Positions 19,877-42,257 of a stretch of 64,000 nucleotides of DNA are shown in pieces; positions within the stretch are counted from its first letter, which is position 1; every line of letters begins with the position of its first letter. The notes below the pieces were generated by a model. It saw only the letters and a program-made list of their open reading frames with translations. It was not told the DNA's origin and made no database searches. Where the stretch lies: the IMG/VR virus record IMGVR_UViG_3300035183_000733, positions 1 to 64,000 of that record. The stretch is one strand, 5' to 3'. The position numbers and the translations under genes are program-made.

Positions 19877-19951
19877 GTCTCGATAGTATAGCGGCAATTA
19901 TACAACGGTCTCTAAAACCGATAGACATGGGTTCGAATCCCATTCGAGGCA
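19877..19951 (+). tRNA. amber suppressor tRNA(CUA)
   Basis: GTCTCGA/TCGAGGC acceptor; CGGT-CT-CTA-AA-ACCG. Confidence 0.9.
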
Positions 19952-20017
19952 CTTTTTTATAGTTTGGTGTCACAGGGAAAAAGAAGCAGAATTAAGAAAT
20001 AAATTAAAACAAAAGCC

Positions 20018-20041
20018 ATGAAGTAGAACAAGCCACCGTAA
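20018..20041 (+). promoter_or_regulatory. MK(amber)NKPP minigene leader
   Basis: AAAACAAAAGCC-ATG AAG TAG, same context as 19254. Confidence 0.55.
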
Positions 20042-20139
20042 GTCGGTTGTCAAAAGAATGAGGGAGACGTTCGCAAACCCGAACCGTTCATAAACGTGAA
20101 CGCCGAGAAATAGCGAACACAACTATAAAACTCAAAACA

Positions 20140-20487
20140 ATGACAACAATGACAACAACAAAAGTTGAGGCAACGCCTCAGAACATCAATGACGCCGTAG
20201 TGCGCATAGCAGAGTACGCCAAAGCAAAGGGGTACCAATTCAACGAATCGGAAGTGCCCTTCCGCGAGCAGAACATCGCGTTCTGGCAGGGCAGGAAATA
20301 CAGGTTCCTGCACTACCTCTGGAGACACGTGATGAAGATGGACGGTCAGTCGCCAAGGGTGGAGTACTCGGAGAGAGAACAGAAGATCAAGGCCGCGCGA
20401 AAGGCCTGGAAGGCCGCTCAGGCGGAGGCGGAGAAGCTCCAGAAGGAGTACAAGGAGATTAAAGGGGACTTCTACAAGTCCAAGTAA
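20140..20487 (+). CDS. hypothetical protein, basic helical C-terminus
   Basis: ORF followed by terminator hairpin ~20490-20514. Confidence 0.75.
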   Translation: MTTMTTTKVEATPQNINDAVVRIAEYAKAKGYQFNESEVPFREQNIAFWQGRKYRFLHYLWRHVMKMDGQSPRVEYSEREQKIKAARKAWKAAQAEAEKLQKEYKEIKGDFYKSK

Positions 20488-20608
20488 CAAAAAGGGACCC
20501 GCAGGTCCCTTTCTCTTCGATATATAAATAAATTTAGAAATCTTCCTAAATGGAGCACCTGATGGAATTCGAATCCTTCAAGAAGTAAATCACAAAACAA
20601 CACAGACA

Positions 20609-20830
20609 ATGGAGAAACCTGTACTCTATTCACTGCCGTGCGGATCTTGCGGCACACTCGAATCGCTCAAGGTAACGGAACTCGGTCACGTAATGGCCAG
20701 GTTCAGGATAGAGGAGGACGGGCACTCCAGGTGGATAAATTACGGCGTCGCGATGGTCGACGACTTGCTTGCGACTAAGAAGATCTTCAACACAAAGAGC
20801 TGGAATAATGAGGAAGTTACAAGGGTTTGA
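20609..20830 (+). CDS. small hypothetical protein
   Basis: CxxC motif. Confidence 0.6.
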   Translation: MEKPVLYSLPCGSCGTLESLKVTELGHVMARFRIEEDGHSRWINYGVAMVDDLLATKKIFNTKSWNNEEVTRV

Positions 20831-21053
20831 TAAGTTCGGTATAAACGAGGACGATGACCAGGAGCTTTTGGCGAAGCTGAGTCTTCCCGTCGAGGACAGG
20901 ACAGACGAACTGACCGGTATTGCCGAGGAAGTATCCAAGCGCGTCGATTACGAGTCCGACCTCGCGAGGTACATCTGCTACAAGATGCTCGCTGATTGCA
21001 ACGACCACGAGCTGGCGCTTAAATTCCTGCGCCTGTGCAACGAAGTAAAATGA
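20808..21053 (+). CDS. small protein with targeting-like leader
   Basis: MRKLQGFDKFGINE. Confidence 0.55.
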   Translation: MRKLQGFDKFGINEDDDQELLAKLSLPVEDRTDELTGIAEEVSKRVDYESDLARYICYKMLADCNDHELALKFLRLCNEVK

Positions 21054-21544
21054 GACATGTTAAGACATATAAGGTTTTCGAAGCCGAGTACGACGTATTT
21101 GCGAACAAGGCTGGCGAGGATTTTTGGGGCGATACTGGGGCCGGAATACTACCCATTTGCAGAGCAACTGGGAGAGTACTGGTTACCTACCGCTCTAAAT
21201 ACGTTAACGAACCTCACTCGTGGGGCGTCGTCGGCGGTAAGCTCGACGACGGCGAGACGGATGTTAAGGATGCTGCGAAGCGGGAGCTCCAGGAGGAACT
21301 GGGGTACGAAGGAGAATTCGAGCTCGTGCCGGCGTATGTATTCAAGAGTCAGGGCGGCGGGTTCGAGTACCACAACTTCATCGGGGTGGTGGAAGAGGAG
21401 TTCGAACCGACGTTAGACTGGGAAACGGAGAAGGCGAAGTGGGTGACGCTCGACGAGCTGATGAAACTTAGGCCGAAGCACTTCGGACTTGAGACGCTGA
21501 TCAAGAACAGCGGTGATATAATTAGGAAGTATGCAATTAAATAG
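21050..21544 (+). CDS. NUDIX hydrolase with targeting-like leader
   Basis: GGKLDDGETDVKDAAKRELQEELG Nudix box; MRHVKTYKVFE. Confidence 0.9.
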   Translation: MRHVKTYKVFEAEYDVFANKAGEDFWGDTGAGILPICRATGRVLVTYRSKYVNEPHSWGVVGGKLDDGETDVKDAAKRELQEELGYEGEFELVPAYVFKSQGGGFEYHNFIGVVEEEFEPTLDWETEKAKWVTLDELMKLRPKHFGLETLIKNSGDIIRKYAIK

Positions 21545-39763: not shown

Positions 39764-41281
39764 ATGCAACCATCTTCGTTTCAGAGTAACATCTACAGTG
39801 CCATCACGGACACTGACAATAACATTCTCATAAATGCCAAGGCCGGTTCGGGCAAGACGACCACTATCGTGAATGCGCTCTCGCTCATACCGTCAACGGA
39901 GTCAGTTATTTTTCTCGCGTTCAACCGATCCATTGTCAAGGAGCTCCAGGCGAGAGTGCCAAAGCACGTTATCGTGCGTACTCTGCACGGGAACGGCGCT
40001 AACGAATTACGTTATCACTACGGCCGCGACATAGTTGTAGACGAGGCAAAAATATCCAAGATAATCAAGAAGGTCTGCACCACGTGGGACATAGCCGAGG
40101 AGGAGCTTGAGTCGTACTGTGGTCGCGTCGAGAAGCTGGTCGACATTCGCCGCTTCGCGCTGCCGCAATCCCTTCCGGAGCTGCTCGACTTGACCATGAA
40201 GCACGGTGTTGAGATTATGGGCGAAGAGATAGAACACTCGCGACAAGTGCTGCAGCTCGCTATGAAGGACAAGAAGACTTTCGATTTCACGGACATGATA
40301 TTCGTACCGGCCACATTCGACAAGCGCGTGCGCAAGTTCAAGTACGTGTTCGTGGACGAGTCTCAGGACTTGAACAGGGCTCAGCAGACTATGCTGCGCA
40401 AGATAGTTGATTTCGAGAATGGCGGCCGCTTTATTGCGGTGGGAGATCCAGGTCAGGCCATCTATGGTTTCGCCGGCGCAGACATCGATGCGTTTGCTAA
40501 CCTGAAAAAATTATTGCCCAACACGATAGAGCTGCCTCTCAGCGTATGCTACCGTTGCGGGTCTAACATCATATCGCACGCCCAAGGAGTGGTGCCAGAG
40601 ATTCAGGCGAGAGAAGGTGCGCACGGCGGAGAAGTGAGGTCCGGTTCTTACAAGGAGATTGCGCCCGGGGACTATGTTCTGTGCCGCAACACTCGCCCGC
40701 TCGTTTCGCTATGCTTACAGTTTATTGCAGGCGGAAAGAAGGCAACCATCAAGGGCAGAGACATTGGGAAGAACCTCATCAACATGATTAAAAAGACGAA
40801 GGCCAAGTCGCAGGACGTGCTTTTCACTAAGCTTGGTGTGGAGTACAAAAAATTGGTCGACAAGGCCAAAGCCACGTTCCCGTTCAAAGACCCAGAGAAG
40901 GTTTCGTTCGTAGTTAATTTCGGCGATAAAATCGAGGCACTGCGTGCGATAGGGATGGAGTGTAGGAACGGCCATACTGACGAGATGATTTCCACTATTG
41001 AGAAGATATTCACAGACAACGTTGAGGGGATTGTGCTAAGCACCATGCACAAGTCGAAGGGCCTTGAGACGGATAACGTGTTCATAATCGAGCGCCAGTT
41101 GTTACCTGCGTCATACGCTACGCAGGAATGGGAGCGCATCCAGGAGAGCAATCTGGATTACGTTGCGCGCACGAGAGCTAAGAACAAACTTATTTACGTA
41201 AACGACTGGGCCGTGGATTTCGACGATCTTCCGAGAGTAAGAGCGACCGTGAACGAATTATTGATGGAGGTAACAGCATGA
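39764..41281 (+). CDS. UvrD/Rep-family SF1 helicase
   Basis: AKAGSGKTT, FVDESQD, VGDPGQAIYGF, STMHKSKGLE. Confidence 0.9.
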   Translation: MQPSSFQSNIYSAITDTDNNILINAKAGSGKTTTIVNALSLIPSTESVIFLAFNRSIVKELQARVPKHVIVRTLHGNGANELRYHYGRDIVVDEAKISKIIKKVCTTWDIAEEELESYCGRVEKLVDIRRFALPQSLPELLDLTMKHGVEIMGEEIEHSRQVLQLAMKDKKTFDFTDMIFVPATFDKRVRKFKYVFVDESQDLNRAQQTMLRKIVDFENGGRFIAVGDPGQAIYGFAGADIDAFANLKKLLPNTIELPLSVCYRCGSNIISHAQGVVPEIQAREGAHGGEVRSGSYKEIAPGDYVLCRNTRPLVSLCLQFIAGGKKATIKGRDIGKNLINMIKKTKAKSQDVLFTKLGVEYKKLVDKAKATFPFKDPEKVSFVVNFGDKIEALRAIGMECRNGHTDEMISTIEKIFTDNVEGIVLSTMHKSKGLETDNVFIIERQLLPASYATQEWERIQESNLDYVARTRAKNKLIYVNDWAVDFDDLPRVRATVNELLMEVTA

Positions 41282-41592
41282 TGGTAAAAAATACAATAGT
41301 AGAGATTACAAGAGCAGACGGCAAGCGCGTGGTCTATATCGCAATGCTTCGTAGACCCGAGATGTTGGCACCGATTCAACATAAGTTGAGGGTGAAGTCT
41401 GTAATTTACGGATGTGTGGTATCCACGTATTGCCCCGGTATGTGCTTCAATAAGTCTATCGAAGCCGGAGGCACTATGACTGTGGATAACAGGGCCGGAT
41501 ACGTGCATGACGTTAAAATAGTGCCGGTATACTCAAAAAAGGAAAAGAAAGATAAACGCTGCATGATGTGCGGTCAACCAATTAAAAAATGA
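41278..41592 (+). CDS. hypothetical protein
   Basis: coupled ORF. Confidence 0.55.
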   Translation: MMVKNTIVEITRADGKRVVYIAMLRRPEMLAPIQHKLRVKSVIYGCVVSTYCPGMCFNKSIEAGGTMTVDNRAGYVHDVKIVPVYSKKEKKDKRCMMCGQPIKK

Positions 41593-41644
41593 CCAAAGGT
41601 AAAAGACACTTAACAAATGGAATATTTCATCAAAAATAAATCAA

Positions 41645-42076
41645 ATGAACAAACAAAGTAACAGAATCATCGTACTTGAATATAGAATTGAGCGCGATCA
41701 TACCGAAATTGATCTTGACCTACTTGAGAAGCAGTTTCCAGGATATAGTGACGACGACAAGAACTATCCACAGATAGTTCGCAAGAATAACAACAAAATG
41801 TCGTGGTCCGGTGAATGTGAGGTTATTGAGATTGGACATGTTGAGAAATTCATTGCCGATGCAAAAGCCAAGGGCTGCACACACATGGAAGTGATGCACC
41901 ATTCTGATCACAACGGATATTACTTTTACGGTGTGCATGTGTCGAGCGCGGATAAAAATGGAGCGAAGGAAATTAACGAGGAAATTAAAAATAAGCACGA
42001 TGCCTTGTTGAGGAAGAAAAAGGCGGAGCTGGAGGCGGAACTAAAACAGGTAGAGGCGGAACTCGGTAAAAAATAA
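41645..42076 (+). CDS. hypothetical protein, C-terminal coiled coil
   Basis: 143-aa ORF. Confidence 0.7.
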   Translation: MNKQSNRIIVLEYRIERDHTEIDLDLLEKQFPGYSDDDKNYPQIVRKNNNKMSWSGECEVIEIGHVEKFIADAKAKGCTHMEVMHHSDHNGYYFYGVHVSSADKNGAKEINEEIKNKHDALLRKKKAELEAELKQVEAELGKK

Positions 42077-42099
42077 TAATTATATTTGTCGTATTGAAT

Positions 42100-42184
42100 G
42101 CCCAGGTGGTGGAATTGGTAGACACGCTACTTTGAGGGGGTAGTGTCGCAAGATGCACGAGTTCGAGTCTCGTCCTGGGTACCA
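42100..42184 (+). tRNA. tRNA-Leu(GAG)
   Basis: class II cloverleaf, CCA encoded. Confidence 0.95.
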
Positions 42185-42186
42185 TC

Positions 42187-42257
42187 GACCCTGTAGCTCA
42201 AGGGTAGAGCGCTGGTCTCTAAAACCGGGGTTGCGGGTTCGAATCCCGTCAGGGTCT
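42187..42257 (+). tRNA. second amber suppressor tRNA(CUA)
   Basis: GACCCTG/CAGGGTC; CTGGT-CT-CTA-AA-ACCGG. Confidence 0.9.

Follow-up and report, generated by a model that had tools for sequence, protein, structure and literature searches.

Two amber-suppressor tRNA genes in a huge phage that keeps the standard genetic code

Introduction

What are two amber suppressor tRNAs doing in a phage genome that still ends genes in TAG? The question is raised by a stretch of 64,000 nucleotides (nt), hereafter the window, which comprises positions 1 to 64,000 of the IMG/VR virus record IMGVR_UViG_3300035183_000733 and contains, at 19877..19952 and 42187..42258 on the plus strand, two different tRNA genes with the anticodon CUA, called here Sup1 and Sup2. 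A preliminary description, made from the letters of the window, had placed both genes there and suggested regulatory or conditional suppression, or else an early stage of TAG recoding. We report that Sup1 and Sup2 are both structurally sound as genes for amber-suppressor tRNAs, that their bodies are unrelated and that they lie inside tRNA arrays; the phage genome uses the standard code and is not TAG-recoded. Judging from their sequences, both very likely function as amber suppressors.

The window is the first part of a single 373,759-bp virus record, which has a 165-bp end overlap and is therefore effectively complete (CheckV completeness, 100%). The guanine-plus-cytosine (GC) content of the genome is 50%, and the source sample was a microbial mat.

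Results

Structure and identity of the two tRNAs

ARAGORN and Rfam agreed on both genes. Against the Rfam tRNA model RF00005, whose gathering score is 29 bits, Sup1 scored 56.2 bits and Sup2 67.7 bits, the latter ranking second best among the 22 Rfam tRNA matches in the window. Both have canonical D loops (with GG), TTCGAAT T loops and the same 7-nt anticodon loop, CU-CUA-AA. The features required of a suppressor loop (seven nucleotides, U33, CUA at 34-36 and a purine at 37) are all present, and the A36-A37-A38 run is typical of tRNAs that read codons starting with U. As the preliminary description had stated, the acceptor stems and discriminators differ: Sup1 combines G1-C72, U2.G71 and C3-G70 with A73 and a 5-nt variable loop, and Sup2 combines G1-C72, A2-U71 and C3-G70 with U73 and a 4-nt variable loop. 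Sup1 contains two mismatches, A27.A43 and U13.U22. The CCA end is encoded in 7 of the 48 phage tRNAs scored and in neither suppressor.

Across 12 correctly oriented relatives (row L114 of alignment A1, on the wrong strand, was left out), 12 of the 20 stem pairs showed compensatory changes. One IMG/VR homologue (L085) has the acceptor top of Sup1 (G1-C72/U2.G71/C3-G70) and compensatory changes lower in the stems; acceptor tops similar to that of Sup2 occur in L086 and L097, and a search of IMG/VR for the exact Sup2 core found nothing. A comparison with the other 47 tRNAs of the phage did not identify either suppressor as a recent copy.

The label 'Pyl' that ARAGORN attached to these genes reflects the anticodon alone. 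In tRNAPyl the D loop is small and lacks G18G19, the variable loop has 3 nt and the anticodon stem 6 bp; the GG-containing D loops, TTCGAAT T loops and 4-5-nt variable loops found here led us to reject that identity, no search aimed at pyl genes having been made. A supE-type origin from tRNAGln was also rejected, the three tRNAGln of the phage reading UGUCC...GGACA-A (U1-A72) as against G1-C72 in Sup1 and Sup2; nearest-neighbour comparison of the bodies found no Gln affinity for either.

A shared anticodon arm

The anticodon arms had been described as resembling that of the tRNA-Trp(CCA) in the window (46691..46763, plus strand; arm GCGGT-CTCCAAA-ACCGT). The resemblance is real, at 14 of 17 positions for Sup1 and 13 of 17 for Sup2, but it is not specific to Trp: a tRNACys at genome position 212728 agrees at 14 and 12 of 17 positions, respectively, and the arm GGTCTCTAAAACCG is carried, in IMG/VR and metagenomes, by dozens of CUA tRNAs whose acceptor stems and discriminators differ among themselves. 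At least 40 other CUA tRNAs, their bodies unrelated, have this Sup1/Sup2-type arm. The body of tRNA-Trp(CCA) also differs from those of the suppressors (A1-U72, G73). Since it is common to CUA tRNAs with differing bodies, the arm does less to prove descent from tRNATrp than to suggest a form that suppressors prefer; on these comparisons, convergence on an optimum would be as likely as such descent. An arm of the Sup1 type is carried by the sole CUA tRNA of a TAG-recoded IMG/VR phage, G010, and so works as a suppressor in nature.

The laboratory amber suppressors su+7 and supE of E. coli are a tRNATrp and a tRNAGln with the anticodon CUA. Like them, Sup1 and Sup2 present CUA in a CU-CUA-AA loop on a Trp-type stem, which explains the earlier impression of a Trp resemblance; unlike them, they have neither the Trp features (A1-U72, G73) nor the Gln features (U1-A72).

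Genetic code of the genome

Greedy tiling of open reading frames (ORFs) over the whole genome gave a coding density of 0.855 under the standard code, and of 0.871, 0.869 and 0.857 when TAG, TGA and TAA, respectively, were read through; TAG brought no larger gain than the two control stops. No 20-kb bin favoured TAG read-through. The density of the positive control Lak-A1 (two pieces) rose from 0.65 to 0.84, and that of G010 from 0.57 to 0.84, so the test has enough power to see recoding. Lak-A1 belongs to the Lak megaphages, Prevotella phages that use code 15 and read TAG as Gln.

A scan of every stop codon in the 374 kb agreed with the density test. Stops flanked on both sides by 50 open, coding-like codons numbered 18 for TAA, 2 for TGA and 0 for TAG. 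Of the 45 ORFs of greatest length, terminase and tail sheath among them, 31 end in TAA and 1 in TAG, and a read-through census found no long piece pairs in this set. The absence of genome-wide recoding, and of TAG from the interior of long ORFs, had been proposed from the window; both hold across all 373.8 kb, the rest of the genome being no more TAG-recoded than the window itself. A lone long TAG-joined pair (217194-218765, minus strand, TAG at 217860) was examined and rejected, as it consists of a CoaE-like gene and a separate, ATG-started gene 36 nt further on.

Whereas RF2 has been reported for some Lak and Agate phages (10.1101/2021.08.26.457843), no phage RF2 was found here, and the sole release-factor homologue is a decayed RF1-like gene at genome position 317471-318065 (L070:1296-1887), adjoining a tRNA-Thr(CGU). 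This remnant has kept the PPT (PxT) and GGQ motifs. It is 5'-deleted, with domain 1 absent, has lost about 35 residues of domain 2, and is split by a +1 frame change. The short RF1-like proteins of its family number 681 and have a full form of about 226 aa; members occur on phage-sized contigs of up to 448 kb.

At 3053 and 6522 of the window, two TGA codons lie in frame and are flanked on either side by sequence that is strongly coding-like (scores 0.84/0.90 and 0.91/0.78). They may mark adjacent genes in the same frame, or read-through or frameshift sites. We found no UCA tRNA, and Pfam returned nothing for the ORFs flanking the two codons.

TAG as a stop codon

In the codon-usage gene set of 406 genes, 246 end in TAA, 125 in TGA and 35 in TAG. 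TAG is therefore the rarest stop (8.6%), without being unusually depleted; such a share is typical of bacteria. Four genes had been named in the preliminary description as ending in TAG, at 5580, 14038, 25248 and 31045, and the first three were confirmed. The TAG at 31045 was not confirmed as the end of a gene: it is preceded by only 30 open codons and directly followed by TAA, and no ORF of at least 30 aa ends there.

A genuine TAG stop is exemplified by the AAA ATPase gene at 11771..14038, with a TAA two codons later. The GNAT / ART-PolyVal-like gene at 4330..5580 has a TAA one codon after its TAG, and a 149-aa gene at 24799..25248 is followed, 4 codons on, by an in-frame stop that is TAG again; a NUDIX hydrolase gene at 21035..21544 also ends in TAG (all four on the plus strand). 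Over the genome, the annotated TAG-ended genes are accessory (AAA ATPase, GNAT/ART, NUDIX, CoaE-like, exonuclease, phosphoesterases, glycosyltransferase, HNH/homing endonucleases), and there is no recognised structural gene among them.

Extensions past TAG have a median of 8 codons, do not differ in length from those past TAA and TGA (Mann-Whitney U test, p = 0.78), and score as non-coding; the +4 context after TAG carries no signal. These analyses of the TAG stops gave no evidence of programmed read-through or of guarding against read-through. The suggestion of regulatory or conditional suppression consequently finds no footing in the genome: no TAG has coding sequence on both sides, and the extensions are short and non-coding.

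Recurrence in other large phages

Among the large phages tested, carriage of a suppressor by an unrecoded genome recurs. LR756500.1, an uncultured huge phage of Al-Shayeb et al. (462 kb), has one CUA tRNA, and the standard code applies throughout its length. Of the carriers from IMG/VR, tested over at least 140 kb, three (G012, G013 and G014) use the standard code and G010 is recoded. Leaving aside Lak-A1 as the positive control, four of the five other carriers tested (LR756500.1, G012, G013 and G014) are thus unrecoded, across 24-45% GC; G012, G013 and G014 are partial contigs that could hide recoded regions, and these standard-code counts are upper bounds. Carriage of two CUA tRNAs recurs as well: LR756501.1 has two, adjacent to each other (two sampled pieces of it look standard), the TAG-recoded Lak-A1 has two different ones about 900 bp apart, and two different CUA tRNAs stand side by side on several metagenome contigs.

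Two of these carriers merit a separate remark. The single tRNA gene of G014 (L148-L155, IMGVR_UViG_3300049020_000031, 141.5 kb, standard code) is the CUA suppressor, with a Sup2-like acceptor top (G1-C72, A2-U71, C3-G70). The recoded G010 (L121-L129, IMGVR_UViG_3300031994_000011, 171,958 bp, with terminal repeats) has one ORF of 6,244 aa with 195 TAGs and another of 2,546 aa with 96 TAGs. Its TAG positions align with E in 8, D in 4 and Q in 1 of 27 cases (24-27 aligned positions), and in its recoded genes Glu is 2.3 points lower and Gln is not lower. TAG in G010 may hence be read as Glu rather than as the usual Gln, with Glu weakly ahead, by about 2 log-likelihood units. We also tried G010 as a route to the amino acid inserted by the suppressors, and rejected it: 24-27 aligned TAGs and a lead of Glu over Gln of about 2 log-likelihood units are too weak.

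Genomic context

Sup2 starts 2 nt past the end of a tRNA-Leu(GAG) with an encoded CCA (42100..42184, plus strand; ARAGORN, sequence read directly), a spacing that suggests that the two probably share one precursor. Upstream of Sup1, by 62 nt and on the same strand, lies a tRNA-Cys(GCA) (19744..19814, plus strand; ARAGORN). Promoter and terminator scans around Sup1 and Sup2 detected nothing exceeding shuffled controls, and a metagenome search with the ORF adjoining Sup2 found nothing. A gene for a CCA-adding enzyme is located at genome position 303121-303492.

Between the two suppressors, directly 3' of three tRNA-Gln genes, the phage encodes a glutamyl-tRNA synthetase (GluRS; 32025..33587, plus strand; Pfam tRNA-synt_1c, 304 bits, plus Anticodon_2; NCBIfam gltX_bact, 430 bits). 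It is the only aminoacyl-tRNA synthetase family found in the genome, where tRNA-synt_2, 1b, 2b and 1 had no matches and GatB is absent. Its nearest solved structures are 6b1z and 6brl (535 bits), which we take to be Elizabethkingia enzymes and which would, if so, hint at a Bacteroidota host. At the C36-reading Arg358 site, the phage enzyme has K-E-K where that of T. thermophilus has R-P-R (the residue count may be off by one), and the 6b1z enzyme retains Arg. An E/Q-type synthetase is present in 1 of 14 other suppressor-carrying records (LR756501.1), and in none of LR756500.1, G010 and Lak-A1.

Strains that have diverged by a few percent from the phage are present in soil, wastewater and freshwater runs; related sequence in a run labelled as RNA is probably DNA. 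Contigs of the soil and wastewater strains span the Sup2 region. At the Sup1 site, the contig of a close soil relative (run X3, soil metagenome) matches up to 19877 and then continues with a different tRNA-like 5' half (GTCCGGTAGCTCAGTTGAAGAGC...), which indicates a cassette-like exchange of single tRNA genes between strains.

Relatives and other features of the phage

Besides those for the CCA-adding enzyme and GluRS, the genome has genes for the terminase large subunit and a tail sheath, and 49 tRNA genes in four clusters. At the DNA level, it had no match in the phage collection. Its best tail-sheath match is LR756500.1 (40% identity over 99% of the protein), and the further nearest records are Flavobacterium phage MaF61, the 636-735-kb genomes of Al-Shayeb et al. 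and the Lak phages (about 35% identity over 73-80% of the protein). To call the phage unlike Lak, as had been done, is therefore misleading, as its nearest tail-sheath relatives include Lak and Al-Shayeb phages with one or two CUA tRNAs. A Bacteroidota host is suggested solely by the phage relatives and by the nearest solved GluRS structures, if those are Elizabethkingia enzymes; a search of bacterial genomes with GluRS found nothing, and hence gave no host call. Synteny was explored through a UvrD-like helicase; no tRNAs lie close to its relatives in IMG/VR (40-51% identity).

The tRNA arrays contain other unusual genes. Many isotypes that normally have short variable loops (Asn, Gln, Val, His, Glu, Cys, Gly, Thr, Lys, Met) are represented by tRNAs whose variable arms are 10-17 nt too long. 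They are located at 31102-31191, 31575-31659, 43088-43174 and 47316-47401 in the window, and at 212633, 212728, 313700, 314319, 314924, 315252, 315352 and 315713 in the genome, usually beside a copy of the same isotype of normal length. A limited literature search found no description of such long-armed tRNAs of these isotypes. At 24106-24241 of the window, Rfam recognised a 136-nt tRNA (47.8 bits) that ARAGORN missed, by eye a tRNA-Asn(GUU) in which about 62 nt are inserted between the anticodon and T arms. A 75-nt class-I tRNA at 24580-24654, labelled 'Ser' by ARAGORN, has the anticodon ACU and an anticodon stem close to that of the tRNA-Arg(UCU) at 52717, and may be a miscoding or decaying Arg-type tRNA. 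Finally, a tRNA-Ala-like gene (G3.U70) at genome position 212306-212380, minus strand (L008:12306-12380), has the 8-nt anticodon loop CUUUGCAA, which is the architecture of +1 frameshift suppressors.

Around the arrays, four loci of the window are likely to serve host takeover or RNA repair: 4330-5580 (the GNAT + ART-PolyVal-like protein), 14125-15336 (a K+ channel, Ion_trans_2 + TrkA_N), 26988-28076 (an ARPP-1 domain protein) and 56185-57675 (an RlaP-family nucleotidyltransferase). The terminase large subunit, at genome position 326688-330518 (L014:6688-10518), is 1,276 aa long and additionally matches PHROGs for helicase loader, primase, endonuclease and ribonucleotide reductase, a pattern that usually signals an intein insertion.

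Discussion

The phage fits a class that has been described before, of standard-code genomes with an apparently idle suppressor and no in-frame cognate stops. Borges et al. found suppressor tRNAs in standard-code relatives of recoded phages, and proposed a route in which low GC leads to loss of a stop codon, then to gain of a suppressor and finally to recoding, with reversion allowed; their example, which they interpret as a step towards recoding, is a TGA suppressor found in gut Agate phages of low GC (10.1101/2021.08.26.457843). As in those standard-code relatives, a suppressor is present here, in-frame stops are absent and the cognate stop is the rarest. Unlike the Agate case, ours concerns two amber suppressors in an environmental huge phage of 50% GC in which TAG ends 35 genes. 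A paper on Zeta crAss-like phages (Crassvirales of the gut, about 150-190 kb) found that diverged phages keep a CTA suppressor without any suppression, TAG being rare in them and always closely backed by another stop; its authors doubt the early-stage idea, propose host weakening or counter-defence, and expect two suppressors to enhance the effect (PMC12386605). The likeness lies in suppressors that look idle and persist in diverged, unrecoded genomes. The difference is that TAG ends 35 of 406 genes in our phage, with back-up stops no more frequent than after TAA or TGA. What is distinctive here is the combination of 50% GC, a non-gut origin, two suppressors and continued use of TAG.

In huge phages, Al-Shayeb et al. 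record RF1, RF2, CCA-adding enzymes and aminoacyl-tRNA synthetases; the word 'suppressor' is absent from their main text. With Lak, the phage shares two different CUA tRNAs, a very large myovirus-type genome and many tRNAs, but the Lak phages are truly recoded, have 26% GC and live in the gut, whereas this phage is unrecoded, has 50% GC and comes from a microbial mat. One of the Lak-A1 suppressors has a tRNAGln-like end (U1-A72 / A73), in contrast to the G1-C72 ends of Sup1 and Sup2. LR756500.1 is alike in using the standard code and in the arm of its CUA tRNA, TCGGT-CTCTAAA-ACCGA, which is nearly that of Sup1; it differs in its 24% GC, single suppressor, 26 tRNAs and lack of GluRS.

The account we lean towards, and hold to be slightly on the probable side, is a general and partial read-through of UAG that the phage tolerates and whose benefit lies outside the decoding of its own genes. 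Sup1 and Sup2 would be transcribed together with the neighbouring tRNAs, would receive their CCA ends from the phage's own CCA-adding enzyme or the host's, and would be charged by a host synthetase. By analogy with the E. coli amber suppressors, GlnRS or LysRS would be the most likely, because both lean on U35. Normanly et al. reportedly found in 1990 that E. coli CUA tRNAs with anticodon-dependent identity are charged mainly with Gln or Lys. Gln or Lys is, by the same analogy, our best guess for the inserted residue, and the two different bodies may be served by two different synthetases. The A36-A37-A38 loop on a G-C-rich stem would compete with RF1, giving partial and untargeted UAG read-through in the infected cell. 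This the phage should tolerate: 35 of its 406 genes end in TAG, the annotated ones are accessory, and a median of 8 residues would be added. As there is no in-frame TAG to decode, the phage does not benefit by decoding its own genes; we think it likelier that it gains by damaging or manipulating the translation of the host or of a competitor. The unrecoded, suppressor-carrying state would then be a permissive background, from which TAG recoding arose in G010 and Lak.

Several results weigh against this tolerated, general read-through. The isotype comparison (nearest neighbours among 169 phage tRNAs, with the anticodon arm masked) gave low scores and mixed neighbours and assigned neither suppressor, so that the inserted amino acid is a guess. 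Back-up stops within 2, 5 or 10 codons are no commoner after TAG than after TAA or TGA (Fisher test, p at least 0.48), and in 8 of 35 cases the next stop after TAG is TAG itself. The genome thus bears no sign of adaptation to suppression, a state that fits weak or unexpressed suppressors equally well. Moreover, since the soil relative switches exactly at the first base of Sup1, Sup1 is, to judge from that contig, at least dispensable or exchangeable.

Among the alternatives, it is unlikely, if worth serious thought, that the phage wields the suppressors deliberately against the translation of its host or of competitors, forcing UAG read-through on host mRNAs, those of defence included, and on the mRNAs of co-infecting standard-code phages. 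They would then be expressed with the tRNA arrays and matured by the phage CCA-adding enzyme, while the abundant late phage proteins would be insulated by their TAA or TGA ends; two unrelated bodies charged by two host synthetases would make host escape hard, and loss of the phage RF1-like gene would remove an opposing activity. We give a comparably small share of our belief to the view of the preliminary description, in line with the Borges model, that this is pre-adaptation or early TAG recoding, with the suppressors first and in-frame TAGs yet to accumulate. Suppressors are indeed reported in standard-code close relatives of recoded phages (10.1101/2021.08.26.457843), the tail-sheath relatives include the TAG-recoded Lak phages, a Sup1-type arm serves the recoded G010, and TAG is the rarest stop, at 8.6%. 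However, the model starts at low GC and with loss of TAG stops, whereas this genome has 50% GC, has kept 35 TAG stops and contains no in-frame TAG in 374 kb; with four of five other carriers unrecoded at 24-45% GC, the state looks stable rather than transient, and the same stability argument has been made for the Zeta crAss-like phages (PMC12386605). That the suppressors are instead leftovers of a TAG-sense ancestor, whose lineage reverted, seems improbable. Recoded relatives exist (Lak), another tRNA replaces Sup1 in the close soil relative, the RF1-like gene has decayed, and reversion is allowed by Borges et al. (10.1101/2021.08.26.457843); yet both tRNAs are intact and high-scoring, with two different bodies, there are no fossil in-frame TAGs or split genes, and reverting hundreds of sense TAGs is a long path.

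We find it very hard to believe that the suppressors serve to extend the C-termini of particular TAG-terminated phage proteins. At 265406-266647, 97277-98050, 355155-355691 and 202424-202975, it is true, 39-57 codons stay open past the TAG, and the gaps after TAG-ended genes are somewhat longer (median 86 nt, vs 29 and 60 nt), but these extensions score as non-coding (-0.63 to 0.10), extension lengths are distributed as they are past TAA and TGA, tRNA arrays account for the longest gaps, and the annotated TAG-ended genes include no recognised structural gene. Little credence, too, is due to a private pair in which the phage GluRS charges one or both CUA tRNAs and UAG is read as Glu, even though GluRS is the only synthetase family found and lies between the suppressors in a tRNA-rich region, position 36 alone separates CUA from the Glu anticodon CUC, and the phage enzyme has Lys at the C36-reading Arg358 site (again with a residue count possibly off by one). 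G1-C72, U2 and U11-A24 of Sup1, moreover, presumably recall identity elements of E. coli tRNAGlu. Sup2, however, has no Glu-like features; the GluRS gene directly follows three tRNA-Gln genes, and ordinary tRNA-Glu genes are present as simpler clients. We do not think that GluRS is a dedicated partner of the suppressors, because such an enzyme is missing from 13 of 14 other carriers, including the complete or near-complete LR756500.1, G010 and Lak-A1. There is also scant reason to suppose that Sup1 and Sup2 are not suppressors in vivo, being silent, uncharged or decaying copies from tRNA-array turnover. The arrays are in flux, with duplicated and odd tRNAs (ACU anticodon, 8-nt anticodon loop, long variable arms), the Sup1 slot has been exchanged in a close relative, and Sup1 has its A27.A43 and U13.U22 mismatches. 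Against this stand the high Rfam scores of two independent CUA tRNAs with the same anticodon arm, the recurrence of that arm on at least 40 others, and the occurrence of two distinct CUA tRNAs together in LR756501.1, in Lak-A1 and on several metagenome contigs; the recurring arm and the recurring pairs argue for selection for suppression.

Broken genes are the usual clue to stop-codon recoding in phages, and suppressor tRNAs are taken for the means by which it works. The presence of a CUA tRNA is not by itself a reason to switch the annotation of a phage to code 15. A phage of 50% GC from outside the gut fits poorly with the published route, which starts from low GC. Intact suppressors with nothing to decode, as in this genome and in most of the other large suppressor-bearing records tested, support a use of read-through itself, or a long persistence of suppressors as a permissive background.

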